A program made the translations under genes and the position numbers. 56,036 nt of DNA from Girardia tigrina (lineage: Eukaryota): contig MQRK01193787.1 of NCBI GenBank assembly GCA_001938485.1, positions 1-56,036 of the forward strand, written 5' to 3'. Positions 1 through 42,300 of this stretch are shown piece by piece (position 1 is the stretch's first letter; every line of letters begins with the position of its first letter). The notes beneath the pieces are model-generated. The model did no database searches, had not been told where the DNA came from, and worked only from the letters and a program-made list of their open reading frames with translations.

Positions 1-194
1 AATTCTTTTGCGGTGTTGAGCACGGATGGATCCGTCAAGCTTTTGTAGCGGATTTTGTCAAGCGCATCGCTGGAATTGGAGATCAATTCCCGAAGAAAAA
101 TCTCTTTGTTCGAGTAGAATGTGTTGATGATTAGACTCATCAACTGGGTGATTTCGACCTGAAAGGCGAATGTTTCGGTTTCACAGTCGGTCAT
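1..194 (-). pseudogene. HSP90: Hsp90 N-terminal coding fragment, running off the left edge; captured fragment or possibly a true gene start
   Basis: Reverse strand from ATG at 194 reads [64 protein letters not shown], the Hsp90 N-terminal signature. Normally conserved positions are altered by single transitions (FQAEIAQ to FQVEITQ, RYES to RYKS), suggesting decay. It is not in the ORF track. Confidence 0.93.
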
Positions 195-415
195 GATTAG
201 AATTTGAAAATTTTTGAAAATGATATTTCTATCTGTGGATTTCTTTAGCACCGATTTGCAGATTTCGATTTGATTCNNNNNNNNNNNNNNNNNNNNNNNN
301 NNNNNNNNNNNNNNNNNNNNNNNNNNCGGTCATGATTAGAATTTGAAAATTTTTGAAAATGATATTTCTATCTGTGGATTTCTTTAGCACCGATTTGCAG
401 ATTTCGATTTGATTC
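188..415. repeat. Exact 89-bp duplication on both sides of a 50-N gap (188-276 = 327-415); probable contig-overlap artefact
   Basis: The sequence immediately left and right of the N run is identical. Confidence 0.85.
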
Positions 416-537
416 AACTCTATGAGTTTAAGAGCAAGACTCAATACGGATTTTACTTCCTTTTCTAAACTCGAACTCGTTTTAATTATCAATCTCAAAT
501 TATTCCAATCATTTGCCGTGATCATCGTATAAATTAA
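370..537 (-). pseudogene. SMU1-like (CTLH region) coding fragment within the chimeric ORF
   Basis: MITANDWNNLRLIIKT...[23 protein letters not shown] resembles SMU1 DINSGHWDTVLQAIQS...[22 protein letters not shown] (recalled alignment). Confidence 0.5.
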
Positions 538-639
538 TATTTGTTTTTCCAATTCCCAATTATTAATGTAGCCCTTTTTAAATGGCATAAACAAAAACAG
601 ACTGGATAAATTATTACAGTCGTTTAATTCTGATCCGAT
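538..639 (-). pseudogene. ACTR6: Actin-related protein 6 (ARP6) coding fragment within the chimeric ORF
   Basis: IGSELNDCNNLSSLFLFMPFKKGYINNWELEKQI matches the ARP6 motif NQIDE..D.SGLFYILPFQKGYLVNWDVQRQVW. Confidence 0.75.
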
Positions 640-747
640 ATTTCGCGGATTTTCGAAATGATCGATAACTTTCTCATGATACAATCGTGTCATGAGATTC
701 GGAGAGCTTTTTATCAAACGAAACGATTTCGCAGTTATATTTTGCAT
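631..747 (-). pseudogene. ISCU: IscU Fe-S scaffold N-terminal fragment with mitochondrial presequence; start of the chimeric ORF
   Basis: A basic, Ser-rich leader is followed by RLYHEKVIDHFENPRNIGS, the IscU/NifU-N signature YHxxVxDHYENPRNVGS. It stops before the first conserved Cys. Confidence 0.9.
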
Positions 748-1281
748 ACTGTTTTTCTAAAATCAATTGGTTTTGATTTCTGTGCCAATTATTAATTCAA
801 AAAGGAAAAAATCTCGTCAAATTCTAAAAATTTTATTTGGTTTGAAAAAATTGTGAATTACTCACACCATTTACAAATCAACCAAACACACACACACACG
901 CATAAATTCCTCACCCGCTCGTCATTGGGCAAACATATACACACATATCCACATTTTTCAAATCACAACTCATTTCACAACTCACACACAAACAGAGTGA
1001 GAAAGATAAATCAACTTCAATGCGCCTTGCATACAAAGAAATCGACGATGATCGTAAAAAAAAACAAATGAGGCTCACAATGCCCTTGTTTAAATAATAC
1101 ATTTTCCATAAAGCGTCACAATTTGGTATTTAATTGGACGAGTTTCAATTGACGATTTTCTGTGTCGATTGAATGGAAAATATGTGAGTTTAAAAATCCC
1201 ATTGAATAACAAACAAACAATTATCGATTTTCAATATCTGTCTTGAAGTTTCTTTCGAGTATTTTCTACAACCATCAAAAC

Positions 1282-1470
1282 ATGAAAAAATCGACCAATT
1301 TCTTTGAGAATAAATCGATTTCCTGCCTCATAATTGTGTTAGCGCTCATTGACACTCATTCGTGCATATCTATCGGCCAGAAAATCTTTCTCGAAACGAA
1401 AACGGATTCATATTTGATTTAACTATATACATCATCACTAAACCATATGAACGTGATGATTTCATATTTA
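1282..1470 (+). pseudogene. Frameshifted 5' fragment of a secreted protein, possibly GH31 alpha-glucosidase-like
   Basis: MKKSTNFFENKSISCLIIVLALIDTHSCI looks like a signal peptide. A shifted frame then reads YRPENLSRNENGFIFDLT..KPYERDD, reminiscent of YKLENLSSSEMGYTATLT in lysosomal alpha-glucosidase. Confidence 0.3.
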
Positions 1471-1643
1471 CTTATTTATATATATTTATATATTTAATTT
1501 AATTTAATTAATTTAATTTTTTCTTAATGATTTTATTTAAAGTATTAATTTATTTTAATTATTTAATTTAATTTTAATTAGTTCAATTAATTATTTTAAT
1601 TAAATTATTTTATTTTTAACAAATGGGTTCAAAAATGAGTTAA

Positions 1644-2108
1644 AACGGAATCGCAACGCGACCAACACATATTAAACAATCTGCTGATGAACCATTCCAA
1701 AAAATATATATGGATTTCTGCGAACATTTTAAAAGAAATATTAATGGATCTCAATACATACTAGCGATAATCGATCAATTTAGCAGATACATCAGTTTGA
1801 ACGCAGTAGCTCATCAAGACGAGAAAACCGTGCGAAAGGTATTACTAGACAAATGGATTTTGAAATACGGACCACCAAAAGAAATCCATGCCGATAGAGG
1901 AAAAACATTCGAATCAGCCTTTTTTAAAGAAACAGCAAATAAATTTAAAGCTGAGATAGTATATTCCAGTCCTTACCACCACAATACCAATGGGATTGTT
2001 GAGAGACAATTCAGAACAATTAGGGATGCCATGAATATACGGATGAAAGACGAGGTCCACAAAGATTGGACGGAAATGAATTTTAAAGAAAATTCTATAA
2101 AACATTGA
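1644..2108 (+). mobile_element. Ty3/Gypsy-type (rve) integrase core remnant
   Basis: EPFQKIYMDFC...YILAIIDQFSRY...KYGPPKEIHADRG...SSPYHHNTNGIVER gives a D,D(35)E-type core. It is truncated on both sides with no RT or LTR seen. Confidence 0.9.
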
Positions 2109-4036
2109 AATGTTAATCTATAAAATTAATGTAATCAGAAAACAATAAATTAAATTTTTAAAATAACGTTTTTAATTTTAATTAATTCAATTTTTATCTG
2201 TATTTATTGTCGGGGTTCTTTTTGGTGATCTTTAAATTTTTGATATTTTTAAATTTTCGATATTTTTAAAAAATCATATTTATATTTTAAATAAATCAAA
2301 AATAATATTAAAAATTTTATTANNNNNNNNNNNNNNNNNNNNNNNNNNNNNNNNNNNNNNNNNNNNNNNNNNTAATAAATTTAAATAGTGATTAATATTT
2401 GTGTATTTTAAAAAATCGTGATTTATATTCAAAAATAAAATAATATTTGCTGTATTTCAAATTTGTGAATTGTATCTTAAAGTTGTAAATTTTTTTTGCA
2501 AATTTTTGTTAAAAAGAAATAAAACTTTTTATTAAAGAGAAATAATTTATAGTTTAAATTATTAATAATCACTATGTTTAAATTGAATTTTCAAAATATT
2601 TTTAAAGATCTAAATTTATAAAAAATTGAATAAAATAACATATTTATTTATTTATCGATATTATTATGTATATTTAGAATTTTTAGATCTGGATTATGAA
2701 ATTGAAATAGTTCCTCATAAATTTGTTTCAATAATGAAAATTGCAGTAGAAATAAAAGTTTGCAAATTATGAATTCTGATTTCAATCACGAACCTAATAT
2801 TTATAATCCAGTATTTTTATGTATAATTAATCTTGACAAAAAAAGCGAAAGAAAAGTTCCACCACAAAATTGTTTGAATAATTGTTATTTGTGATAGAAA
2901 TAAAGTTTTGAAGTTTAAATATCTCTATAGTTTTTTTACTATTAATATTTCTATTTTAGTCTCACGACTTATTGGTGCATCACGTTTTTATATTTAAATA
3001 TAAAAAAATAAATCTTTCTTTGTCTTCCAAAAACGCTACAAATTAATCACAACACCTGATATATTTAATAAAAAAATTTACAAAGATCGAAAATATTTTA
3101 CAAGACTATAAAAAATTGAATTAATAGAATATCAAGATGGACTAGATGATTATTACATTCGTTTGATTTTTTTTGTAACAAAGACTTTATGCAATTAACA
3201 AGATATATAGAAGCATATTACGAGTCAGAAGTCCCATTAAAAAGCCTTGTCTTATTCCCCTCTTCATTTGGAAATCCCTTTGTCCTATGGAAGCAAGACT
3301 TAAACATTTTGTTATGAAACCTTAACTATTTATTCTGTTTCCAAACTCTGTCCTGCTATATGCTAATCAAATTTTATGTTTCAGGTCCTCTTTTTGATTA
3401 TTAAAAACAATCATATTGGTACTTGGTTACTGTAGTTATTAAATTTTTTTAAACAAACTTCATCATTAGACTTTTCAGAAGTAAAAATCGCTAGGATGGT
3501 ATGTTACTGGAAATATGATAAGTAAAATTCGTGTTAATTTCATTCTATTTAGGAGACTCTCGGTCTGATCATTTGATACATGTCATGATATTTGTAAATG
3601 AGTGCTTTAATGAGTGGTCTAAGTTCTTGAAACTATGACATCTCAATTACAAATATTGTATGTTTTTAGTTCACAGATATTTTTTTCTTCGACGAATGTC
3701 ACCAACGGTTAATAAATACGTAATAGAGCATCTTTCCAAAGAGACAATTCTTTACTCATTGAAAGATTGCTCCAAAATATAGAATTAACAAGTAAAATTT
3801 TCCAAAAAAGGATATGTTAGAATTAAATGGAGTAAAATTAAAAATTATTTTAAAACACTTTTGTATATTATTTTTCCGTAAATGTAAGTTAAAAATGCTA
3901 GTGATTTACAAGTTCTGTATACGAAGCACAATTACACAATTCTTTTAAAGAAAATAATTATATTTAAATAAAATTAAAAAAATACTTTTTCATTACTCCT
4001 TCATTTTCTTCGATTGTTCTTATTTAATTCCTTTAA

Positions 4037-4250
4037 CCCTTTCCAACCCAAATTATTATTTTTGAATGTTGATTTAAATTGCTAAGAAACCAGTGAGAAT
4101 CGCGCTTTTTGGCATTCTAATATATGTTGTGTCATCTATTAGACTTTTTAGAAACTATTACTAAGTGTAAAATTTAAATTTGGTAAAAGAGATAACTGTA
4201 ATTTAATTTTTCAAATATGTTGCCATAAGGCAACAATGGGCTGGAAAGGG
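4037..4250. mobile_element. piggyBac-like MITE
   Basis: TTAA|CCCTTTCCAACCCA ... TGGGCTGGAAAGGG|CTAA: terminal inverted repeats with a TTAA-like target site. Confidence 0.65.
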
Positions 4251-5374
4251 CTAATTTTTTCTGATTTTTTTTCTAATTTTATTTGTAATTTTTTTTCTAA
4301 TTGAAAAACATTTGTTAAGTAGTTTGAATAAGTATGCGAAATTTTAGCTCACTAGCATAATTGGAAGTTGGTTAAATTGAGAGTTAAAGTTTTGTTCTAC
4401 TCAGATTGAATAACAGAGAGACAGTCGAAGAGTGTAGGGTGAAAAAAAGAAGGTCAACAAACACAATTTAAAAACTATGAAATCCTTATTTAATGGATTC
4501 AAAAGTTCGATAGATATTGAAAATTCGAAATCGATATTCCCAAAAACAATTGTAAAAAAAGTAGTGAGCTTCATGAGAATAGCAATTCGGTGAAGATAAA
4601 TAATTTATTTATCCAAGAAAATTGTTTATTTAAAAAATATCGGAACATTTCCCGTGACAATTCCGTGTCCCCAGCGTGTCGTATTGTATGCGAAATTAAA
4701 AAAAAATGATATCTAAAAATATTTGCTCATTATTAATAATTTTTTATTATATATTTTAGTATCCATGTCGGTTTTTTCTGTGTGTATGGGATAATTTTAC
4801 CAAAAGAATAAAAAAAAATTGTTGAAAAAACAAATTGAATTTTATTTCCCCGAAAACAAATCCATGGTAAATGTTGACATTAGCTTTTATTTTTGTGATA
4901 AGGAAAGTTCGATCTTGTCCCGGCTATCCAATCTCCCGTTTTATCATGAATAATAAAACTATTTTTTCGGCTAGCCTTTGAATCATTTATCTTCCCTCAT
5001 TTCCAGGCACGGTTTTTTTTCTGTTCCCCTAATTATAAATTTCGAAACCCGAAAACAATTTCCCCATTCGATTCTTTTCCCAAACAACAAAAATCCTCAT
5101 TTTATCTCCCACCCCCCTCAAAACTAAAAGAAATAGGTAAATGTAAAAAACGTATTTCCGATTTACTTTATCGATTTTAATGATCCGATCAATGGTCTTG
5201 ACTGGGTCAGAACAAACACCTACGTGTTTGGTTGGGTTATTTCGCATATCAATCGGGAATAGAAGTGAAATGCACAGACAAAGTGTGCTATTTTAACCCA
5301 GCATTTGCCATGCACTCTTATTATTATTAAGCCAAGTAACAGACGATGTTGCTTTTCTTTCATGTTTTCTGCTT

Positions 5375-5384
5375 CCAATATAGG
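5375..5384. promoter_or_regulatory. Perfect CArG box (SRF site) upstream of a muscle gene
   Basis: CCAATATAGG fits CC(A/T)6GG and lies about 470 bp upstream of the twitchin ATG in a CpG-richer region. Confidence 0.4.
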
Positions 5385-5745
5385 GAAATATTCCTCGATC
5401 AATTTTTGTCGATGCTACAGTAAAGGAAAGTTCAAAAATCAGACGCGAACATCTTTGCTGCGAATCAGTCGGCACAGTGTGCCACAGCGATGTGCACTAA
5501 AATTGCACATCTTTCGCCCATTTCAAAAGTGTGTCTGTTTATGAAAACCAACGAAATCTACGTACACATATATACATATACATCCCTATATATACATATC
5601 TATATAAACAGAAAACAATCAAATTCAATTTTACTTATCCTCATTTGATTCTTGTGATATTTCTGAACGTAAAATATTTCGAATTCATTTTGAAAAAAAA
5701 AACAAAATAAAAAATTATATAACAAAACAAAAACCGGTTTGAGAC

Positions 5746-5777
5746 TTTTCTTCCAATTCTTCTCTTCTCTCTCTCAG
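5746..5777 (+). promoter_or_regulatory. Strong splice acceptor in the 5' UTR (5'-UTR intron or trans-splice site)
   Basis: A long pyrimidine tract ttttcttccaattcttctcttctctctctcag ends 70 nt before the ATG. A candidate donor AG|GTAAAT is at 5136/5137. Confidence 0.45.
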
Positions 5778-5846
5778 GATTCGGAATAATTTCGTATTTA
5801 AAAAAAAGCCTAAAGATTTTTTTTTAAAGAGAAAAATAAACAAAAA

Positions 5847-8800
5847 ATGCCAGGTGATTGTTGATTTTTATTTATTTTTTTTTAATATTTATTTTGATAA
5901 AAATAAAAAAAATTTAATTTATTTTATTATTATTATTATTATTATTATTTTGGTATTTTTTTCTAGGAATAATTCCAAAATTTCCTGAAAAACCGAAAAT
6001 CCGACAAGCAGGAAAAAATATCATCTTTGAAATTCTATTGTCGAGTGATCCGGTCTCAGAAATCGCATGGTTCAAGGGTACGACCCCTATAGCTAATGGC
6101 GGAAGATATAAGATTACAAATACGAATAAAAAACCCACGGAGAATCTATTAACCATGGAAATTGTCGGTGTTGCCGCGAATGATAGTGGAGAATACAAGG
6201 TGCTTGCGAAAAACGAAATCGGTGAAACCCAAGCGACTATCAATTTAAATATTGCCAACCCGGTCAAAATGTATTTTTCAAATTTGAACTTTAATATTAT
6301 TTTAAACGAATAACTTTCAGAATTCAAGGAGTACCACCAAAATTTCTCGAGGTGCCCCAAATAAAACACCAAAACAACGGGATCCTAATCACGTGCATTC
6401 TCGAAGGTACTCCCAAACCGACCATTGAGTATTTCTTCAACGATCAACCTCTCCGTGCGGATGCCACAAGAAAAATCGTCGTCACTCCTCAAGTAAAAGA
6501 CAAATATGAAATCAAAATAGAAATCTTATCAACAAAACCGGAATTCGGGGGAATGTATAAAGTGACTGCAAAAAACCAATATGGCGAAAGCAAAGCGAGT
6601 ATTAACATCAATTTACAAGGTGAATTTAGTTATTTAAATTCATGATTTTTTTTATGATTTATCGTTTTAATTTAAATTAGTTAATTAATAAATTTTAATT
6701 AAATTTAATATAAATCAATATAAAAATGTGATAAATTATTTTGAAGGAATATTCTTTTGCTAATTTTGCTGTCCATTTGTAATGACGACACACAAACACA
6801 AATACGGTTTGAGTGTGCTTAGATGTTTACTTTAGTCGATTACGGTATTATGTAATATTCGTCAGTACGTGAGGCGACAGGCATGCATGCCCCCATAACG
6901 AGACCGAGTGACATCAGGAATCTCGAGTTATAATACACCTGGTTGCATTCCTTGGTTCATGTTGTCATGTTGTCAATGTACTGGATTTCACATTTCCCAC
7001 ACGCATCTATACACACATCGCGAGAAATACGCACACACGTCGAGAGAAATACGCACACACGTTCACTCACTTAAGAACGAATAGTTTTATTAACGATAAT
7101 TATACGATAATTATTGATTTTCAATCAGAATGTTGAGTATTGTATAAAAATTATATTTCCTATATTAATAAATATAATTAATAATTAAATATCCTATAAA
7201 AATAATACGTGAAATACAGTTCGTGTCTTGTTTCCTTTTTTTAATTTTTTCAAACAAAAAAAATGTCTTTTCCCGTCAGAAAGTATTAGGGGCAATTGGG
7301 AAAATCACTAAAAATAACTTGAAACAAACAATTTTCCCTTCGTTTTTAATCAATTAAGTTGTCATAAAATTCCTGTTTATGGTTCTTGATGGGATGCAAT
7401 AAATACATTGAACTAGAAAGAGATAAATGTTTGCTGGCGACAATTTACCGCGCAGACCGAGAGACGAGAACAAGAATTAATTTGTTATCGGTTTTTGAGG
7501 AACGAAAATAATACAAAAATGGAATAATCATTATCCAGTCGTGAAATTCGGGCAGTTTCATTACAACCTTTTATTATGTATGGTTTTCCTTGTATCATGT
7601 ATATAAAATAATTGTAAGGTAATCATCGTAACTAAACTGTGCCATCTGAGCATTTTTACAATTTATATTTATAAAAAAAAGATACATATGTAAATATAAA
7701 AAATAGGGTTTAAATATTCTGGAACGATATCAACATCAGACGAATTCTTTCTTATTCTTTCTCTTGAATTGTTAAATTTTTCGATATGGGCGAAGAATAT
7801 TCCAGTCTGGGAAGTAATTAAAAAAAACGAGTTATTTTATCAATAAATTCTTGTTTTGTGGATGTGATGTCCTGTTGAGAATATTTCTCGGTCCAATGAA
7901 TCATAGACTCTGAACAAAGGTTTTGAAACCGAAGTGAGTACCATCATTTGTCACCATTGGCACTCGCCTGCTATAAAATCCGACTAACCAGAGAATAAAT
8001 AATTAAAATTAACTCTAAGTTTCAAATAAGTAACCTATTTGGATAGTAGCATTGCTTTACTGTTGTGGATTGCTATCCCCACTTACTATTTCGAAAGTAG
8101 ATGGCAAAAGAAAAAGGTTTGAGACGGATTCTTATACAATCTAGTTTCCCAAGGCCACTACATGGAAGTATATTTGACTGAATAACACAGAAATTCTGTG
8201 TTCATGTAAACAATACTATGGGCCTCCCATCTCTTTCAATGGTATTGAGCCTAAGGCTCTTTATAGGGTCCACCCAAACTAAAGTCCTTAAGGGCCCCCC
8301 GATAGGCCTCCTACGGGGTCAGTGTCCTTCTGCCTGCGAGCGACCGGTTTTCCAGTTGCAAAAGACCAGCCATGGAATTTGGTGCCATGGCCATACATAC
8401 CTTTGGCGGTTACGGTGGACGCGTAACATCCTCTGAATGGGCACTGGAAAAACAATACTATACCCCATATTTCACTCTTCGATTTACCTTTGTAAATAAA
8501 ATACATTTTTAATACACCTTTTTACACTCTTTTTTGAAAGAATTAGTATCTTAAATTAAATATTGTATTGACAAATTTTGAAAAAAAGCCCATATTGAAA
8601 GGGTTTAATCGTTTTCTCTCTTTATTGGTCCCACATTTCATATTCAATGCAGAAAAAATATTATCAAAATGGTAAAATATAGAAATTATAGTTTAAAATC
8701 ACTCTTAGGAAAGAAGCACGGATAATCTGCTGATCTTGTAACTAAAACAAGACAAATATTTTCTATAAAATATTTCTTCTTATCACTCTCATCAATATCG

Positions 8801-11800
8801 GTATCGGATGATCAGGAAACAGAAGATCTTTCCTCTACATCTCTTTGCTGCCATGTGTTTCGAATGCTGATAATCTATCAGGACAAAATTCATGTGTATC
8901 TATGGTGTCAAAAAATCAGCCAAATCGATTGACGTTGGATAAATAATTTATTTAGATCATTTGACATGTTTCTAAATTTTCTTTTATCATTTTTAGCAAT
9001 TATAAATTCACAAAATTTATTCAAAAATAATAAATAGCAGGAAATAATGTCAAAAATTTAGATGGCCTCACTTTACCAATTTTGAATATTAATTACTAGG
9101 TTGTATTGTCTGATCAATAATGATTCGCCGAACTGCCACTAGTAATGGGAACCGACACTTAAATAGAATGGAAAATTCTTTTCATACAACATAAACAGTG
9201 GTCACTTCGAAATTGCGAATTCTCAACGATGTGACTCAACCAAATTACAACTTTTGATATCCCTTATTGTTGCTGTTATTATTCAATAATATTTAATTTT
9301 AATAAAAGTTTTTTTTAATTGTTTCTTCTTATTAACCCTAATGGGGCCGAAACTATTTCCTTTAGAAAAAATGAATTTTTGACATTAATTCTGGTTGATT
9401 ATATCAAAATAACTTGTTCTACATTAAAAAATATTTTTTGTTTCATACGGTCTCATGACTCATGACTCATATATACAAAGACTATTGTACCTAATGCCGC
9501 CTGTTGCTGAGTCGTCAAATTGATGTAAAAAATTATATTTGAGCAGTGTTCTTTTAAAAGGACGGTGGCCCCATTCGGGTTAAATATATATTTTTAGATG
9601 TATATTTACTGATGATGATTGAATAATGTAATTTAATTTTATTTTCATGAAATATATAACTAAAATAAGTTTCCAAAAAATCTTAAAATGTATAACAATA
9701 TGATCAATAAAACGAATAATAAAACATTTTGCAATGATTGTGGTTTAATAAATTTAAAATGTTTAAACGATCGAAGAAGCGGTTCTCAACTCTTTCTGTG
9801 GTGATTCATTTTACCATTTTGTTAGGACTTAGTGACCAAAAAAGAAAATCAATACTACTAAAAATATATAAAAATTATTCTAATACAATTTAATGAAATT
9901 GCTGATTCTGCTTTGCTTTTACAAACTCAACAATTTGTGGGAGTGTTGGGGATAATATACGTCACAAATCGTCTTCTCCATCAATAAAGTTGAAGCACAA
10001 AAATTATAATAAATCAAAAAAATTTATATAATAATCAAAGTAATTATGAAAAAAAATATTTTTCTCATTGTGATTTGACATTATCATAGAACATGACTTT
10101 TTCTTATGTAGGCCTCCTTTCCTCAATGGAAGTACATTATTGCTCTAGCGGCACTTACCCGGGCTAATAGCTCATAGAATTTATGAGGAGCTGAGTCGCT
10201 GTATCATTGTCCAAGCACTTACGTGCAAGTCCTCAACAGATAACAGACCCTGCCATTACACGTTTCCATAGTTCGGTTAGAAAGCATTGTCTTTACAGTG
10301 GTAGATTACAAGCCCTAGCCCACTATATTAAGCTTGTCAGCAACTCCAACCAGGCAAGCTTACGGACACTTTAGCCTAGAGAAGAGAGCTCTAGTTTCCA
10401 AGGGACATCGTGTGGAGGTGTGTCCGACTGTCTTAACTACTTAAAAAATTCTTAACAACCAAGAGTTAAAAATCTTGCCTTAGGGTAATGACCAAATGTT
10501 ACAGAAACCACTGGAAAGAAAGTATGTTGAAGTGCTAGAGAAAACAAATGATAACCCTTAACACCGATCAACATTATGATTCACCGATGAAGCAATGTTT
10601 TTGGGGTTTCCATTTAAATAAAATGATCATATTTACTAATAAATGAGTGTAAAAATAAAGAATTTCTCAGACGTGAGATAACTTATATCTATCACTTTTT
10701 ATTGTTACTGTTCTTTATTAGCGTGGATAAACGAGATTGGAATATATAAAAGAATATTCCCATGATAAAGAAGTAAGGAAAAAAAGAATACATACGAGTT
10801 TATTATTAGAGTAAAATGTCCCTTACACGACAGCATGATAAGGCAAACGAATTTGCATTTCCTTTTAAATTCTATTTGAAACTATTTTTTAATATTATAA
10901 TAATTTCGATGAAACATACCAAATTATATTATCTCTTAGCTGCAGAAACAGTAACCGATGCTGATTCCAAATCCAAGGCAACTCCACCTGTAGTTGTTGG
11001 AGAACCAGTTATTAAACAAGAAGATGGTGGAAGACGGGCAATAATCGAAATAAAAGTAGAGTCTTCTGCAAAGCCAGATGCAACTTGGTTGTTCTCTAAA
11101 AAGCCAATTAAGTCTAGTGGACGTTATTTTATCGACATCGTTAAACAAGACAACTATTATATTATGATTTTGGAAATAGATGATGTAAATTAATTATTAT
11201 AATTACTTTACATTGATGTTATTCCTAAACTTTAGGTAACGGAAAAGGATAACGGTAACTATCAATGTGATATCAAATCTGAAGGTGGTTCCACTTCTTC
11301 GAATGTAAATTTAAATCTAAGTGGTGAGTGAAGTTTTTGTAACATTTCCAAACACTTTCTTAACCTTTCTTTCATTTACTTTATTCTTTCTGTAGCTCCA
11401 ATAAAAAAAGGAGAACCTCCAACTTTTACTATAAAACTAGAACCATGTGAAGTGATGGATGGGGAAGAAGTGGAATTTACAGCAAAACTGAATGGCACCG
11501 AACCATTTTCAATTAAATGGTATCGAGAAGGAAAGATTCTTCAGAATACATCTGAATTCGAACAAACTTATGTCGGTGGAATTGCTAGACTAGTTATTGC
11601 TGAGGTTTTCCCCGATGATTCTGGTAAATACACAATAGAAGTGAAAAATGATTGGGGTCAAGATTCATCATCAGCTCAATTGACTGTTAAAGGTAAACTT
11701 ACAATGAAATTAGAAGAAATAATATTGTTTAAATATTTTTAGAAGAGAACGCTACTAAGAAACCTCAAGAGACAAACGAAATAAAACCAACACCCAAAGT

Positions 11801-14800
11801 AGTTCCACCTTTTGAAGCTAAAGTTCAAATGCCATCTAAAAATGATGTTTCAGCAAGTTTGTAAATTTTTTGATTGTTAAATTTTTTAATAATTTCCAAT
11901 TTAAGATGTAATTAACTGTTAGATGTTCTTGGAACATCCTCAGAATTATTATTAGAAGTTATTTCCGACATCGAATCCAAAATTTATTATGCTACAACGT
12001 TTTCAAAAAACAGTGATTAGCTCTAATATTTAAACAAAATGTTTTTGAGAAACAATTTACTATATAAATCTTAAAGTGGTATAAGTAAAAATACTTATAA
12101 TATTAATATTGGATTTTATTTTCATTTTATAAAATTGGCCTTTAATAAATTTTATCAATTTTAAATTACGCTAACATTATCAAATACAAAATCATTTCCT
12201 TAAATTTTATTAATTAAAAAATCTATATTATCATTTGCTAATAATTATCTTTAATCAAATTTTATAATTTTAAAATTACACAAACATTAACAATTATTTA
12301 ATAGTTTCGTTTTATTTTATTAATTTTAACATTTCTTTTAAAAAATTACATATTTTACAGAATTTCTACATTTTAATTGGTATATTCAATTTTACATTCT
12401 TTCAAAAATTTTTAATAGCATTTCTGAATTCCTGATATTAACAAAACTTCTTCGATTTATTAAAACTATAATATTTACACAGAGTAGGAAATAGCTGGAA
12501 GATAATTTCCAAGAATGTTCAGCTTGAACAGTTCATAAAGAGTTGGATTTCTGAAGAAAAACGTGTCCTTATTATTAGAATAAATGAATTTTATATTTCC
12601 TGGAATCTGAAATATCGGAATCTTAAAGGTTTCTGAACATGGCAACTAAATTTAATAACTTATTAGAATATTTTAAAATAACTTAAACAATCTACTCTAA
12701 TCTCTTATAATACAACAAGAGACAACTATACCAACAAAGAGGAAATATTTTGAAACATTTTTACTTAAAAAAGATGTAATAATTTTTTTGTCCATAAAAG
12801 GTTTGTTAAAAGTCTAAAAGAAGTTTGTAGTTATAACTTATTTTACTAATAAGAATTTGAGTTTTTAAAGAAAACTTAAGCGACAAAATTTTGATGAATT
12901 TATTCAGATATAATTAATATTAACATATTTTATTTAGTGTACGAAACTGAGGGACCAAAAAAAATGCCAACGGAAGTCATCGGTGCAGGTCCAACTTTTG
13001 CCTCAAAAATCACTAACGTAGAATCAAATCAAGGTTTTAGCTGAATATTAACAACACTAATTTTTAACGAAAAATTTTACGTAGGTTCTACCATTAATAT
13101 TCCTATTGATATATCTGGTGAACCCATGCCAGATGTTAGATTTTTAAAAGGAGGAAAAGAAATTCTTCCAGATGGCAGAATATCAATAAAGAGTGATCTA
13201 GCAAAGAAAAAGGTTACATTAAGTATCAAGAAAGCTCAGCCGAAAGATGAAGGAAAATATACCGTGAATTTAGAATATGGTGGAATATTGTATGACTCTA
13301 CTAAGTTTACAATTTATGTCAAGGATCGAAAAGCTTCAATTATGCCTGAGTAAATTCCTTAAATAAACAAATTAATGATATTGTTGTTAATCCCTACAGA
13401 GCAGAATCTGAAGAAGATGACGCTGTTGCTGAACTTGCAGTACCCTCTTCTAGAGGAAGTCGCCGTCCATCTCAAATAGAATTAATAAAGATGAATCTCA
13501 AAAAAGTTGATAAAACAGAAGACGGAGAACCAATCAATGTTGTAAGATATTCATTATTGAAACACGAAAAACTAACAATATAAATAATAAAAATTTCTAA
13601 AGGAAAAAGCTGACAGTAGAAGATCATCACAAACAGAAATACCGAAAACTGCTGGACTCTTAGATCCTAAAATGTTAGAATCTCAACTCCAGCAAAGACG
13701 AGAATCAATGGGGAGTCGACGAACATCTTTGGCTGATGTCATTCCTGGGTTTCCGGCTTTGAAGCATCACGAAAAGCCGAAACAGGTATATTTTCTGCAA
13801 ATTAAGTTTTTTTATTTTTAAACATAATTTAGCCTTTTTTGCCAAATGAGTTAAAACAGTTTTAATTGTAAATAAACATTCTATGTTTAACAGATTAATT
13901 AACAGAAAAGTGATTTAATGATTGCAAAAAGTTATTATGTAAAAGTTATTAAAATTAGGAACTAATTAGAAGGCAAAAGTGTAAGAGTGGATTGACCCCG
14001 GTTGGTAGCAAGTCATAACACTCGGGTAACTAAACTTTACATCAATATGAATAATTCTTGTTTCAATGCGTAATCACAGGGGAATTCCAGTAACATATAT
14101 TACTGACATGAATAATACCACAATGTATATCGTTGTGACCAAATCTTTTCATTTCGTATATTGCAATTTATTTATCTCTGTAACTCCATTCCTCAGTTAC
14201 TTGACTCAAACATGTTAGATCACATATAACGCCATATATAGTGACTTAGCTAATATAACCAAATGCATGGTACCACTTAAATTCTAATACAGTGCTGGAA
14301 ATAAAGATACTTCCACGTTCATTTTTTTTACCCAAGGAAGTTGATACTATTTGTGCAATTTTTTCCTCTGTTTGATTGATCAACAATCATTATTTAATTA
14401 CTTTCCATATCAATTTTAAACTAAAAATACGAGCTTTTAGGAAAGAAGTAAAAAACTTCTCAAAAACGTAGTTTTTCACCTGGAAATAAGTATACGTTCA
14501 CTTTTAAAAAATTTCAATTTAAACAATATCATATCAGAAAAGTGAATGAAATTCCCCGTGAACTTTCTTAGCTGATCAATATTCTTATCAAACTTTTCAA
14601 ACAGTGCCGTAGATAGCAGATACTGACTATAATTACTTGAGATACCCTTGGTTCATGTGATGGTGCACCACGGCGCCATCCATTTGCAGAAATTTTAATA
14701 AAATGGAATGACGCCACATCTTTATCTTTATTCTTATTAGTTTTACGATTTATCTTTGCGAGGAAGAGAAGACTGTCCTTTGTTCTCACCAGATCTATGA

Positions 14801-16043
14801 GTGTACTGTACTTTGATAGTTCAAAGGTTTAGTGTATTTTTAATCAGTAATGATGGTGAAACTAAAATTCCTTGGTTAGCAGTACAAATACTATACTTAT
14901 CAGTTGCAACAAAATATTTATGTTCAATTTCACTCTTCTTAAAAACCTCCTAACAATTCCGAAGGATCAAAGTTATCAGATTATGAGAAAGATCAAATTA
15001 ATAAAAAGACGAAATGGGGAAAAAGTAATGGGAAAATTTCGCAGGAATTAGGGTGCTCACTTGACTTGGTGAACAGATATCTTAGTAATCCCGTCGATTA
15101 TGGTACATAAAAATTATTATTGGCATGTTTACGGAATGAGCTACTGTTATTTTCAAGATGAAATTTTGGAGGTGGTAGTGTCAAGACTTGGGTGGCCTTT
15201 AGTGTACATAGAAAGCTTCTATTAAGATTTACTTCAAAAATGAACTCATATAACTGCCAAGAAGTTTTTTTGTTCTTTTTATCACTTTATTTTAATAAAC
15301 ATTTAGTGAAAGTGAACGTATACTTATTTCCACGTGAAAAACTACGTTTTTGAGAAGTTTTTTACTTCTTTCCTAAAAGCTCATATTTTTAGTTTAAAAT
15401 TGATATGGAAAGTAATAAAATAATGATTGTTGATCAATCAAACAGATGAAAAAATTGCACAAATAGTATCAACTTCCTTGGGTAAAGAAATACATGTGAA
15501 CTTTACTTTATTTCCAGCACTGTATAAACATTCATGAATGCATATTTATTTGCAATGTTGACGTGATTTTATCTACTTAAAAATTGTCAATAACTATTAT
15601 TAAAAAATAAAAATATTAAAGGTTATTTCAACTTGTTTGATTTACTTTTGAACCTTAATTAAAGGATAAGTGTGCTTGATCAATATCGCATTTCAGTGTA
15701 GCCAGTAATTAAAGTCAAATCGAAATCCGATAACATTTCAGTCAATTGGCTCTATTCTGATACGATATTAAATGTTTCTAGATATTACCATCTACTTAAG
15801 ATGAACATTTGCAAAAAGGATAATTTATATTCGTTATGTTTATTTATATGGATCAAGGCAGGGATCGGCAACCTGGGCCTCGATAGCCGCATGCGGCTCT
15901 TTTGATGTAAAGTTGCGGCTCTCCAGTTCCATACACATAAATTAAATATTTTATTATTCTAGTAGAGATATGTTTTGTACTAAAAAATTTTGTATGTTTT
16001 TTATATGAATAATTATTATTTCTTGAAGTAATTTATTTTAAAT

Positions 16044-16101
<58 letters not shown>

Positions 16102-17519
16102 CGAAAATATAATTTGATTAAAGCTTTTTTTATACAACTATTGGACATGTTTCGATGTTTACATACATCATCATCCGCAATTTTTGGATGTTTAGTATAT
16201 GAATATTGAATTGTTTAAATAACACAATTTTAATAGATACATTTACTTTAAAATGTATATTAGGGATTTTATATTATTATTTATTAAAGTATTATTGGGT
16301 AATAATGGCAAAAATATTTTAATTAAAAATTTTAAGNNNNNNNNNNNNNNNNNNNNNNNNNNNNNNNNNNNNNNNNNNNNNNNNNNNNNNNNNNNNNNNN
16401 NNNNNNNNNNNNNNNNGTCGTTCGTAATGTGAATCAAAACCCTTTTGTAGAACAGAAAACTCATCTTTTAAAATGGATGAGGTTCTATCCTTACAACATA
16501 ACCAATGATCAAGAACCTTACTCGATCGACTCATTGCTCGCTAATCCGGGTTTTGAGATGACGATTTGTCTCTCCTATGTACGAGTTTGACACCCGTGAC
16601 AATTAAATTTATATACCAGATTAGCTTGCAAATCACAAACTGTTTTCGATTTGTTTGAGAGGAAACTGAACTTTTGATGTGATAGAGACTACTTTAGCAC
16701 TACTTATTGTTGTACAAATACTCTTCTTAAATGCTCTAAATCCTTCAGAATATGGAATTTTAATGATTTGTTTGTATTCTTTAGTATTTTCTTCTTTTAA
16801 TTGTTTTTTAACTCGTGTATCTGTACATAATTTGTCTAATGTTACCCTAATGTTGTGTTCTATTTGCTTATTTGTATACATATTGTCCCTCAAGCACCTT
16901 CTAAGAATATTTAAACCCTGATTTGCAATTTCAAAACTGGACGACAAATTCCAAACTCTGTGAACAAGCCCTTTTATCATACCCTCTCTGTATTTCTCCT
17001 CACAAAAACTCTGTGGTGTTGTGTAAAGACCTGTATCTGTTGCCTTTCTGAATAATCCAGTTTTATAGCCTCCATTCATCCTAGTGACAAGAAAGTCCAG
17101 AAATGGAAGTTTATTATCTACTTCCAATTCTGTGGTAAATTTAATATTCGGATGAAGACCATTCATGAATGTTAGGAATGGTTCTAAGAGGGATTGATTT
17201 CTGAAAACCAAAAGGACATCATCCACATATTTCTTGTACAACACAGGTTTTTCACCAGGGTATGCATTCATTTTATCCTCAAGCGACTTCATAAATATTG
17301 ATGCCAAAGTTGGTGCTAATGGGGAACCCATTGGGACACCGTCTTCTTGAATGTACCATTCATCATTAAAAAGAAAAGGTACATTTTTGGCACAAAAATT
17401 TAGAAGTTCTTTCAGTGCCTGCTTGTTCATTATTTCATTCACAACATGTCCAATAGTTGTATAAAAAAAGCTTTAATCAAATTATATTTTCGAAATACTA
17501 AACTTGCGTTCACAAGACT

Positions 17520-17559
<40 letters not shown>

Positions 17560-17609
17560 NNNNNNNNNNNNNNNNNNNNNNNNNNNNNNNNNNNNNNNNN
17601 NNNNNNNNN

Positions 17610-17651
<42 letters not shown>

Positions 17652-20600
17652 AAAAAATCATTTAGTAGCTTTTTGAAATCTAAAAATTTTGTAAATGGTA
17701 ACTTTTGGCTCTTCCGTCTTAAAATATTGCCGACCTCTGGGTTAAGAGGTACTCTAATTATTTTTTTCTAGTGTGTTTTAGGACGGGTTAATGTACCCTG
17801 TACATAATTAATAATCAGTATGTCATTTACATAATAGCTTTAAAGGAATAATTCTCAACCTGTAGTTACAGAAATTAAAGACAACAATTAAAAATATAAA
17901 TAATTTAACCGTTTTTACACACAAAAAAATCAACAAGCTCTAAAATTCCAGTTTCATAATTTTTATATTTCATTTTTTTTATTTTATATATTCTCTTTCT
18001 TCACATATAAAATAATACTAAGAAAATATGTTTTCGCAAAAATGATGATGTAAAAGTTACATTCGAACTATGTTCGATTTTCTCTTTCAAAAGGTTAAAA
18101 TATAAAATAATATACGGATGTATATATGTGTCTGAATGTGTATATAAATAATTCAATTCGACAGACTTGATTTCACTGGCATCTTAAAATGATAATAAAA
18201 TGGTACTGATGAAGCTATATCAATGAAAAACTTTACATTGGACATCCAAACCTTCAGCTTTGAATGTCGACAGTTACAGTTTGATCCCAACAGTAGAAAT
18301 GTTCTACGCAATTAAAATGAGACTGCAGAATGATGGCAACAATACCTCTGAAACTCGCGAAAAGTGGACTCAAACCGTAACACTCAAACAAGAGATCCAA
18401 TGCTTTTGAAACTTATGAGTCTCACATTATTTGGTTTTGACTTTATTTTTCATTTCTTGATAATTTACAATCAAATCTTCTTATCTACTTAACCACATAC
18501 TAGATCAATCTTGAATTTGTTTTCAGGTATAGATGAGGATAAAACATACATAATTCAAGGTGGTTAAATGCTAAAAGATGATAAAGCAGTTTCTAACCTT
18601 TAATAACGATATATTTTACAACACTGTGCTCAAAACGTTGACGCCAATCATTACAGTGAAAGTCAATGTAGACATTACTATGAATGATTTATCTTCAGTC
18701 TCTCAAAATATACCGCATTACCTCCTTGTATGGATGGCCTTTCGGGGTTACTTTGATTGAAACACTTGGTAAAACGTAAATCTTCTTTCTTTTGACTTTT
18801 TTTGAGGAAAATTTCCTTTATATCCTCTGTGAGAAGATTATTAAGGAATTGAATTTACTCATTTTAATACATTCATCCTGGCTTGTGCTAATGTATGATG
18901 ATTTTCTATACTATAGATAGTTAAGTTTATTACTTTCATTTAAACTTAATATTAAATAAATGACTATAATTATTGTTAATTACCATTTAGGTAAAAGAAA
19001 CATTTATTACTGAACTGGTGGATCAGAATGTGAAAGAAGGAACCATAAAATGTGTACTAAAGGCAGCATTTTGTAAACCAAATGCTAAATATCAGTGGCT
19101 CAAGAATAAATTGGAAATATTTCAAGGTCCAAAATATAATTTTATTAAGTAAATTATCTTTAATTCATTAAATAACTTGATCATGTACTATCTAATTTAA
19201 GTGAAGGACAAGATTACATTCTTGAAATTAAAAAGGTTGCAATGGAGGATGCCGGAAGATATATTTTAAAATGTAATGGCGTCTCAACTCAGTGTAACAT
19301 TAAAGTGGAGGAAAAGAAAAATACTTATCATTTCAATCAAAAACTTCCAAAAACAGTGGAGGTTGTCCGAAATAAAGACATTACTTTGGAATGCAGTCTT
19401 TCCGATCCTCGAGCTCATGTAACGTGGTACCACAATGGCGAAAAAATAGAAGTAATTTCCTTTTAACTAAATGGATTATCTTAACAAAATAATGTTCAAA
19501 ACGATTTGGTTTTATTATTGTCTTATCTTTTTCATTATATATTAAAAGTATGTGAAAACCAATTAAGGTAGACTGAATAAGCAACTGCATAAACCCAATA
19601 TTCTAAAGACTTTCCGTTAAAGGTTTATAATCAATTCTTTTATTGCTTGCACAATTGGAATAGTTGATTGCTTTTGTTTTTGATTACATCAAGAATCTTG
19701 TTAAGTTCGTGTTAATTCGCAGTTGAAGATATATTTTTGATAACCAATTTAAAACGTAAAAAATTTGAAATAAAAAAGGGTTTTTAATAAAATTTGAAGT
19801 TGACATTTTCAAAACTTTTATTTAATAAAAACAAAATAACATATTTTTAAACAAGTTTTTTGACTAAGTTTACGAGGAACAATTTTCATTTTTTCACACA
19901 CAAACCATTTTTTACATAAAAATAATGAATTATAAATATAGTTGCATAATTTATTATTGCGTTTAATTTTAAAATTTTAATATTAAATTTATAAAATCTT
20001 ATTAAAATTTTATTATTTTTTTAAAAAATAATAATTTAAAAATATTGACAATTATTTTAAAAAACAAAATACACGCCATTTCAAAATATACTTATTGTGA
20101 TAATATACTACTGGAAAAAATATTTGCAATTACATTTTCGTGCATTTTTAAAAGGTTTAGGTAAATTAGTTCTTTTTTAAACTAAAGTCAACCTATTGAT
20201 GTATTATAATATACATTGACACATTTGTTTGTTTTAATAGTTTATTAGATAATAATGAATTTGTGTATTTTTGTNNNNNNNNNNNNNNNNNNNNNNNNNN
20301 NNNNNNNNNNNNNNNNNNNNNNNNNNNNNNNNNNNNNNNNNNNNNNNNNNNNNNNNNNNNNNNNNNNNNCGCAATAATGCACCATCATTCTTTAATAATA
20401 GACACACATTTTCTTTAAAATGTCTATATAAGTTTGATAAAATACCAAACTCTTCATCATTGATTTTATCCACTTCATGACAAATTCCAGACTATAGTGA
20501 CTCTTTGCCATCAAATTGTGGACCATTATATAATCTCTGCTTAATAATACTCCAGACTTTCTCTATAGGAGATAAGCCAGGGCTATGAGCTGGCCAGGGT

Positions 20601-21309
20601 AATATGTCTACTTTTTCAGCAGTAAGCATCTCAATGGTTTTCTTGCTTGTGTGCGCACGCGCGTTGTCTTGTTGGAATAAAAATGAATCTATTTCATTCT
20701 TTANNNNNNNNNNNNNNNNNNNNNNNNNNNNNNNNNNNNNNNNNNNNNNNNNNNNNNNNNNNNNNNNNNNNNNNNNNNNNNNNNNNNNNNNNNNNNNNNN
20801 NNNNNNNNNNNNNNNNNNNNNNNNNNNNNNNNNNNNNNNNNNNNNNNNNNNNNNNNNNNNNNNNTTGCTCCATGACATAAAGTTATCGTTGCCGTCGAGA
20901 GAAAAGCGGCACTCATCAGAAAAAACAACTTTGTCAAAATCGACATTTTCAATAATCCCTGACCGCACTATTTCTACTCTTTTGGCCTTCTGATTGTCTG
21001 ACAATTGTATCCTTTACATCTCCTACGATAACTCAATGCCATTGAACACATACGCCTTCGTATTTTGCGGGTGGACACATTGTTGGACAATATATTGCCA
21101 ATTGCTACTGATGTCACTTTTTTATGACCCTTTTCTAAAGACACTATAGCTTTTTTAATTTCATTGTTTATTTTATATTTCTTCGAGGTTGAATTCCTTG
21201 GAGGATTAAAACCTCTTGCACCACTNNNNNNNNNNNNNNNNNNNNNNNNNNNNNNNNNNNNNNNNNNNNNNNNNNNNNNNNNNNNNNNNNNNNNNNNNNN
21301 NNNNNNNNN

Positions 21310-39300: not shown

Positions 39301-42300
39301 TCTATGTCCTGCAATGTTACTTCACCTTCATTGCGACTGTGTTCCTGGATTGTCTTACAGAGATGACGTGAAGTCTCTCCAATGTATGTGGCGTTACACC
39401 CATTACATATATATTGGTAAATGAGATCTGAACGCAATCCTAATGGCGTTGGAGATTTATTGCCGAATTTTCAATTTTCTGAGTACGGGATATTACTTTT
39501 AAACTTATTGCATTATCTAACTCTTTCAAAATAGAATTTTTAAATATTTTAAACCCCTCTGAATATGGTACAGTTAACACATAACCAATTTCCAAACTTT
39601 TATCATTAGTGTTGCAAGATTGCTCTTGATCTTGAACATCTAAAATTTTAGTATTATTTTTTTGTCAATTAATTTATCAATAGTTTCCTTTGTTAATTAA
39701 TTCACTATCGATTTTGAATATCTATTATCATATAATAATTTGTTTAATTTATTAAGGCTGTCATTACATCCTTTATATGTAGATGAAAGAGCCCATGAGC
39801 GAAAAATAAAACCTTTAATCCTATTTCGACGATATTTGGATTCACGGAAACTAATCGGTATTGTATACAACCCCGTGTCAGTTTTCTTTCTGTAAATCTT
39901 CGTCTCATAACGTCCGTTTTTTCTCTCAATTTATAAATCAAGAAAGGACAATTTCTTATCTTGTTCTTTCTCCATAGTAAACTTTACATTTGAATGCAAA
40001 GAATTCATATAATTTAAAAATGGAGAAATATCTGTTTCATTTTGAAAAATCAAAAAAATATCATCAACATAGCGTTTATACGCTAGAGGTTTCCGACCAA
40101 CAAAAGAATCGACTTTATCTTCAATACTCGAAATAAATATTGAAGTCAAAGTGGGGGCTAATGGTGAACCCATAGCTACTCCATCAACTTGTTTGTACCA
40201 GTCATTATTGAACAGAAAATGCACATCTTGACGTGGCAAAACTTAACAATTCACGAAATGCAACTTCATCAAGTATACTGTGATTAGTAGTATTACTTCT
40301 CCAAAGATTGCAGCACAAATCAATAGGCTCTTTCAATGGAACGTTTGTAAATAAACTGACAACATCAAAAGAAGTCATAATTTCATCATTATTTTTAATA
40401 TCAAATTATGAAATAAAATCCACAAATTCAAAACTATCAAGACACCCAAAACCTTTTGGAATTAAAGGTTTCAACATGACATCGAGAAATTTTGCAATTT
40501 CATATTGTGATGTTCTAATCATCGACAATACTGGACACATTGGAACACCTTCTTTATGTACCTTAGGTAAACCATAAAGTTTATCAGGTTGTGATCCTAC
40601 TGGCTTTAATTTCTTCGCGACATCTTTATTTATATGATTATTATTAGCCAATTTTAATAATAGGTATCTATTTATAGGAAATATATTTCTTAGTAGACAT
40701 AATTTATACCAGGGGTTCAAAACCTTTTCAGACAATGGGCTCTTGATAAATATCGTTACCTCCAAAGACCTGCTACATTTTTTCACGATATATATGTAGT
40801 TAATGGACAATCATATTGTTGGAATATAAAAGTATATTTACAAAATTTACATTCAAAACAATAAACCTACTGTACATTATTTGTCCATGTGTATACAAAC
40901 AGAAAATCAATAATTATTTCGGTACACACTCAATGAGAAATTTTAGGCTTAGTCAATGAACCACATTTTTTCGGAATGACGCGAGATAAGGTAGGGAGAT
41001 ATTCACAGATGAAAGTAGGTATCCTTTGCATGTAATTGATGGAAGAATTACGGTTTGGTCATAACCATTTTAGGCTTTTAGTACCACCATGGTTGCGCTT
41101 GCCACCGTTTGACAACCACTGCATTATATTATAAATAATACGCTAATGTGTTTTTCACTTCTCCCTCCAAAAAATATGGTTTTGGACATTATATTTAGCT
41201 AGATATATCTAAATTAATTATTTGAAAGATATATTTGCATAGTCCAAAATTTTGACTTTATTGCTTTGGACTTTTAGTCCAGAATATTCTATCCAAAATA
41301 AAATTTTATGACTCTTGTGTACGTATTTTCACGACAACATCATGCTTAACGACCAGTAGAGATTAAAGATCATCGAGCTTGTTCTATAAAATAATCTGTA
41401 TAGTATAAATGTTAATGTCACATGTTCTCATCATCAATTATCTCACAGACCGGAAAGAGGCTGGTCCGAGGTTTATTAGGAAACCGTCGAATCAGTTGGT
41501 TGGCGAAACTCAAAATGCCGAATTCAGCTGCAAAATCGTAGCAGTAGCCGCTCCGATTGTTACATGGTGAGACTGATGTTTTAGATTTATATGTTGACAT
41601 AAATTATTTAAGGTTACACAATGACGTCCCTTTGACACAGAGTGTCAAATACATGCAAAGATATTCAGGAAAAGATTATAGTTTAAAAATAAATAGATCG
41701 AAATTGGAAGATCAAGGAGAATATGTTGTAAGGGCAGAAAATAGTTTCGGCAAAAAAGAACATACTGCTCTACTAAATGTTCAACCAATGATGAATAATA
41801 TATCAGGTAATACCTTAACCTTTCTTAATAAATAATAAATGCATTTATTTATTTAAAGCTATGCCAAAAGAATCAACACCTATGCGTCGTAGATTTGAAG
41901 AGGCTCAAATTGACATGTTTCATGAAGAAGAAAAAAAACCACGCTTCGCATTTCCTCTTAGAAATCGATTCATACAATCGGGTAATAGCGTGAAGATCAT
42001 GTGCACTGCCGATGGACATCCGACTCCTGAAATACAATGGTAAGGAGTATCACAAATGTTTGTTGTCGTAAAATTTCATTTCTGCTTTCATTTAAGGTTT
42101 AAAGATGGAGTAGAATTAATTAAAGGAAAATGTGATTATGAAATTTCCACTTTATGTGGAATTACATCTCTCGAGGTTTATTCATGCGGTCTCCAAGATG
42201 CTGGGAAATATAGTTGCCGCATAACGAATAAGTTAGGACAAGATGAAACATCAATGAAACTTCATGTTGAACGTAAGTAATTTGATTAATAATGCCTACT

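Follow-up and report, generated by a model that had tools for sequence, protein, structure and literature searches.

How did one open reading frame (ORF) in a flatworm genome come to carry pieces of unrelated genes, and does it run on into the Hsp90 coding sequence that lies beyond it? The locus stands at the left-hand edge of a window (the whole stretch of DNA analysed, 56,036 nucleotides) of AT-rich animal DNA with a G+C content of ~30%, in which seven runs of N in 56 kb mark a gapped draft scaffold. On the minus strand the frame from the ATG at 747–745 runs without a stop for 140 codons, as far as base 328, and then meets an assembly gap (277–326, unstranded) of 50 N, a length not divisible by three. 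The open frame itself is as a preliminary description of this DNA had reported it. That description regarded the ORF as a mosaic of four unrelated housekeeping genes. IscU and ARP6 are indeed joined here on one strand and in one frame, up to the start codon of Hsp90, whereas SMU1, also named as a source, found no support. Alignment of a single protein with the ORF from end to end had been set beforehand as one of the observations that would speak against a mosaic. No protein aligns in this way, and the ORF as one known protein is ruled out: matches are local only, to IscU over amino acids 5–57 and to ARP6 over amino acids 30–85.

The IscU and ARP6 pieces and their junction

The first piece (631–747, minus strand; ORF amino acids 1–39) comprises a start codon, a presequence-like N terminus and the conserved N-terminal motif of IscU. 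Amino acids 1–21 include four lysines or arginines and neither aspartate nor glutamate, a presequence-like composition. IscU/ISCU chains in the PDB match amino acids 22–52 (E=1.2e-4), the Pfam family NifU_N matches the piece at E=6e-4, under its gathering score, and a phmmer scan of 1.84 billion representatives recovered several IscU proteins. Together these matches bear out the proposed IscU start of the ORF for amino acids 1–39. A genuine IscU gene with an intron after its first exon was considered and ruled out, because the residues past G-S (IGSELNDCNNLS) are identical in the ARP6 protein P0001 and no donor site is present.

ARP6 is the source of the second piece (523–639, minus strand; ORF amino acids 37–75). 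P0001, a partial ARP6 of 240 amino acids, is the best match among the representatives, with 35 of 39 residues identical over its residues 49–87 (E=2e-15), and the PDB chain 6igm_G, also ARP6, matches the piece at E=2.5e-3; the ARP6 segment of the earlier account is therefore confirmed for this interval. Its limits are sharp. In an alignment of 44 ARP6 relatives, ORF residues 37–75 match, and residues 31–36 and 76–79 are never ARP6-like. The nearest named relatives of P0001 are from trematodes, cestodes and one monogenean, at ~50% identity. Three of the four differences between the piece and P0001 involve residues that many family members carry, which makes P0001 probably the gene of a close relative and not the direct parent. 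One change is radical: ORF residue 72 is isoleucine, where 38 of 40 relatives have aspartate and two have glutamate. Such a D-to-I replacement at a near-invariant position suggests that the ARP6-derived residues are not constrained as ARP6 and may represent a drifted copy.

The preliminary description had noted that the pieces are intron-free. In two flatworm relatives (L001 and L002) no intron interrupts the part of ARP6 copied here, which falls inside one exon, so the absence of an intron cannot separate an RNA from a DNA template and is uninformative for ARP6. The ARP6 genes of these relatives (L001, 3064–3594; L002, 1001–2248) have in common an intron just before the ADN(A/C)IY motif; the next intron of L001 lies ~5–6 residues downstream of the copied stretch and L002 has none there. 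Of these two genes, which differ downstream, the Cichlidogyrus one has a 42-bp intron as its only intron. The related claim that all pieces come from one strand and from the 5′ parts of their sources holds for the co-orientation and for IscU and Hsp90, and holds roughly for ARP6, where residues ~49–87 of ~400 are represented.

The IscU and ARP6 pieces overlap at junction 1 (631–639, minus strand), where the codons for I-G-S are common to the IscU family (V/I-G-S) and the ARP6 family (I-G-x). In the ARP6 alignment columns, I occurs in 33 of 40 sequences, G in 35 of 40 and S in 8 of 39. Judged from both protein families, junction 1 is a microhomology junction, of possibly up to 9 nt.

The third piece, the Hsp90 start and the assembly gap

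Piece 3 (416–522, minus strand; ORF amino acids 76–111) is stop-free in the ORF frame and has no match in any search. It had been called SMU1-like. No match was found at E≤10 in the PDB sequence set, which includes SMU1 chains; no LisH/CTLH or other relevant Pfam family appeared at E≤10; and there was no match at E≤1e-3 among the 1.84 billion representatives. The SMU1 assignment is accordingly not sustained, although a diverged piece of 36 residues could escape these searches. The region is also stop-free on the opposite strand (416–530, plus strand; 38 codons), so openness alone reveals neither the strand that codes nor the origin of the piece. Two other identities were ruled out. Piece 3 is not a continuation of ARP6 or another part of ARP6 or IscU, to which it has no similarity, nor is it an ARP6 intron, since the L001 intron lies ~5–6 residues further on, L002 has none and no GT follows the ARP6 piece. 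A search of piece 3 for heat-shock elements, as a test for a native Hsp90 promoter, gave one-mismatch matches only, at a frequency near chance. Piece 3 may be a further capture, or else simply the native DNA that precedes Hsp90.

At the other end of the locus, positions 1–194 (minus strand) encode codons 1–64 of Hsp90 of the cytosolic type, matching its N terminus at E=8e-28 and remaining open to the edge of the window, as had been claimed. The Hsp90 codons are intact and highly conserved.

All three junctions of the mosaic lie within one contig (327–2322), which has gaps at both its ends. This contig runs on into ordinary AT-rich non-coding DNA containing a CA repeat and an integrase fragment, so the mosaic is not a cDNA or vector sequence. 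The position of the mosaic on a 2-kb contig between gaps of a draft with so many N runs could nevertheless be taken to mean that the whole of it is an artefact, either a library or amplification chimera or a mis-assembly of non-adjacent coding fragments. Microhomology junctions also arise when a polymerase jumps in vitro, and searches gave no independent occurrence of the mosaic: among the 1.84 billion representatives there is no protein that spans any of its junctions, the pattern of junction 1 has no match in metagenome contigs, and the 56-kb window holds no second copy of the mosaic or of its parent genes. A word-index protein search with ORF amino acids 1–110 was likewise blank, but the same index also missed proteins found by phmmer. 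Exact look-ups for P0001 and for two ORFs of the window found no record. Against an artefact, an overlap of 9 nt is too short to make a k-mer assembler mis-join, so molecules spanning junction 1 must have been sequenced. Moreover, a rare chimera would have had to dominate coverage to produce three junctions in 330 bp, on the same strand and in frame, within 1.5 kb of ordinary sequence, and the D-to-I change would be unexpected in a chimera newly made in vitro from the functional gene, with the proviso that the true parent was not seen. We regard an artefactual origin of the whole mosaic as rather improbable.

The link from the mosaic to Hsp90 turns on an 89-bp stretch that is present on both sides of the gap. 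Its right-hand copy (327–415, minus strand) ends the right-hand contig and consists of an 82-nt Hsp90 leader (334–415) and ATG ACC G (327–333). The left-hand copy (188–276, minus strand) ends the left-hand contig and consists of the leader (195–276) and the first 7 nt of the Hsp90 coding sequence. The copies are identical at 89 of 89 positions and 0 nt separates either of them from the N run, in agreement with what had been reported. The Hsp90 ATG (333–331) and the ACC G that follows it are in frame with the upstream ORF within the right-hand contig itself, independently of the gap.

An unmerged contig overlap leaves identical sequence on either side of an N run, and false duplications beside scaffold gaps are a common artefact of draft assemblies that requires no second copy. 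The locus resembles them in that exactly identical sequence borders the N run, itself of placeholder length, on either side; it differs in that such a duplication covers only the 89 bp, whereas the IscU, ARP6 and piece-3 junctions lie inside the contig. By the sequence itself the 89/89 match fits an unmerged overlap and is also compatible with a sequence present twice. The simplest reading, we infer, is that two contig ends overlap and were left unmerged, in which case the frame would run on into Hsp90. The earlier statement that collapsing the copies continues the frame into Hsp90 holds if both are one sequence; as the sequence is written, the 50 N break the frame.

A graph assembler ends contigs at the limits of a stretch that has two contexts, which makes a second copy, near or far, a live alternative. 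The mosaic would then be real and the Hsp90 coding sequence foreign to it: the genome would hold two copies of the 89-mer (leader and ATG ACC G), one a short fourth mosaic piece and the other belonging to the genuine Hsp90 gene. The contigs would have been scaffolded across this repeat, or would lie close together with intervening sequence. The four pieces of such a mosaic would be much alike in length (117, 117, 107 and at least 89 nt), and its continuation would lie elsewhere. Both contigs do end exactly at the limits of the shared 89 bp, as at a repeat node with two entries and two exits, and a simple linear overlap is usually merged by graph assembly; the piece sizes would also be uniform. 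The 89-bp duplicate is the only complex overlap at any gap of the window. At the gap 17560–17609 (50 N) a (TA)n microsatellite lies on either side (17525–17645) and is the likely cause of the assembly break; the 34-bp match there is this (TA)n run and lends no support to the idea of a scaffolder that habitually leaves overlaps. Set against the second copy are the frequency with which false duplications flank gaps without one and the lack of a second context for the 89-mer in the window. We consider it unlikely, though worth serious attention, that the Hsp90 coding sequence is foreign to the mosaic.

Proposed origin of the mosaic

We propose that the mosaic is real and arose in the flatworm genome by serial microhomology-guided template switching, that it either adjoins the 5′ end of Hsp90 or takes it in, and that it is probably unselected. 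This account has in our judgement an even chance of being right. A polymerase would start on the 5′ end of an Hsp90 template, hop to the template of piece 3 (~107 nt) and then to ARP6 exonic sequence (117 nt), and make a last hop to IscU, which would be copied up to the IscU start codon. The polymerase could be a reverse transcriptase on mRNAs, or a replicative or repair polymerase on DNA. The first route would be that of chimeric retrocopies (PMC5470649), the second that of gap filling and FoSTeS (PMC8277862), where animal Pack-TIRs offer a precedent for microhomology at the breakpoints of captured fragments. A poly(A) tail, a target-site duplication or an element end is not visible because the 3′ side of the mosaic lies beyond the window, past base 1.

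Several known processes resemble this scheme. Chimeric retrocopies formed when reverse transcriptase switches templates between cellular RNAs have been reviewed (PMC5470649); like the present locus, they string together parts of transcribed but unrelated genes, head to tail and on a single strand, with short shared sequence at the junction and a 5′-most piece that reaches the start of its source gene. The mosaic departs from them in that its middle pieces are only ~110 nt long and stop short of the 5′ ends of their sources, and four sources in a row, all in frame, are unusual. Co-oriented pieces and a short shared junction are nonetheless present, since all identified pieces lie on the minus strand and junction 1 carries I-G-S. 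Another process operates at repaired double-strand breaks, where short stretches of distant loci are chained at microhomologies as templated insertions or by microhomology-mediated break-induced replication. The chaining of short stretches joined at microhomologies is common to both, whereas those chains are usually of mixed orientation with non-coding DNA and the identified pieces here are coding, co-oriented and in frame.

The preliminary description had attributed the locus to serial gene-fragment capture. As serial template switching the idea stands, and fits the I-G-S microhomology junction; the vehicles it named (Helitron, Pack-MULE/Pack-TIR, LTR element and Terminon) find no support in the window, which shows no LTR, TIR or Helitron-type ends. 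That the fragments are cargo of a capturing element, whether Pack-TIR/Pack-MULE-like, Helitron-like or LTR, would suit a window rich in element debris (integrase at 1644–2105, reverse-transcriptase ORFs at 16.6 and 40 kb and a DDE_3 ORF at 20.5 kb), and animal Pack-TIRs fill gaps with microhomology documented at the breakpoints of captured fragments (PMC8277862). In that gap-filling, FoSTeS-type capture, as here, short exonic fragments are duplicated elsewhere with microhomology at their breakpoints, and a neighbouring gene at times acquires a chimeric 5′ region made of captured pieces. The same work stresses nearby parental copies, of which there are none in these 56 kb, and no TIRs or target-site duplication flank the mosaic in the window. 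More broadly, no inverted repeats bracket 1–747 within 1–16000, the left end being outside the window, and the same interval has no long direct repeats of the kind expected of an LTR element besides the 89-bp gap duplicate. Pfam searches of 748–10800 found no further gene fragments and no other housekeeping piece, and the window holds no second copy of the mosaic; the ends of a Helitron (5′ TC and 3′ CTRR with a subterminal hairpin) would lie beyond the window or are undefined. Terminons are a feature of bdelloid rotifers, with an Athena-type reverse transcriptase element at telomeres; the proteins of this window are flatworm-like and no Athena-type element adjoins the mosaic. The integrase fragment is the only nearby element-coded sequence; it is truncated, ~900 bp off and on the opposite strand to the mosaic. 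That an element of these kinds carried the fragments is in our view highly doubtful.

Other features of the window were recorded alongside. The integrase fragment (1644–2105, plus strand) spans 154 stop-free codons with a Pfam rve core (E ~7e-15), and has no coding sequence for reverse transcriptase or RNase H on its left side. No tRNA or Rfam structured RNA was found in 1–6000. A very large multi-exon gene of Ig I-set and fibronectin-III domains, with long introns and a Dscam/sidekick-like domain mix, occupies ~10800–49200 (plus strand), and I-set matches also occur among ORFs in 748–10800. One of its exons shares 79% identity with an ORF on L003, a compact Logan contig (SRR33002330), and 60% with a protein of Trichobilharzia regenti; the window is not human DNA. 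Its introns contain two RVT_1 fragments (16633–17472 and 39931–40810, both minus strand) and a DDE_3 transposase fragment (20492–21004, minus strand); among these three, 16633–17472 and 20492–21004 are bordered or interrupted by assembly gaps. An inverted-repeat pair at 14280–15532, with arms of ~211–250 nt that are 92% complementary and spaced by 746 nt, has a foldback or MITE-like look.

The open frame and its possible meaning

The frame remains open across every junction, including 65 codons of piece 3 and leader for which no coding source was verified. The probability of such a stop-free stretch is 0.0026 by shuffling and 0.026 empirically, from windows of equal length in the neighbouring 10 kb; both values refer to a single locus that was picked for being an ORF. 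For an unselected accident, a fully open frame over all junctions is improbable, at about 1/3 (for junction 1) times 0.003–0.03 (for the 65 codons). Selection is one explanation that suggests itself; the other is post-hoc ascertainment, the reader having been in search of ORFs.

A rival reading is that the locus is a working chimeric gene, in which ~138 residues, from the IscU start and presequence through the ARP6-derived piece and piece 3 to the translated leader, would form an N-terminal extension on an Hsp90 paralogue and possibly redirect it to mitochondria. The frame that is open through all junctions and in phase with the Hsp90 ATG, improbable by chance, agrees with such a gene, as do the basic IscU N terminus, presequence-like and without acidic residues, and the intact, conserved Hsp90 codons. 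No homologue of this architecture occurs among the 1.84 billion representatives, however, and a piece of ARP6 exon followed by a translated leader is unlikely to fold as a linker. The gene is also putative in that its continuity into Hsp90 rests on the gap at 277–326, and its openness is what led the reader to choose the locus. We attach very little probability to a working gene. We infer instead that the mosaic is more likely a young, unselected by-product of template switching, while its putative product may be a chimeric protein directed to mitochondria, or it may act as a small-RNA template.

A broader process can also be imagined, active in the flatworm lineage, by which stretches of ~90–120 nt, taken from 5′ regions of unrelated housekeeping genes with high expression, are stitched into ORFs. 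Selection would then have kept this locus open, giving a cytosolic-type Hsp90 an IscU presequence or providing a small-RNA template against essential genes; we think this improbable. A literature search found no description of such chimeras in the flatworm phylum. The mosaic is of interest as one case and so far falls short of proving a new process. Should it prove an artefact or a false join, it would serve as a warning that identity flanking a gap can mimic an in-frame fusion unsupported by the assembly. If real, it would be a compact natural example of the shuffling of exon fragments from several sources, with an intact frame and a ready-made targeting signal ahead of a chaperone gene, and as such raw material for the birth of new genes.
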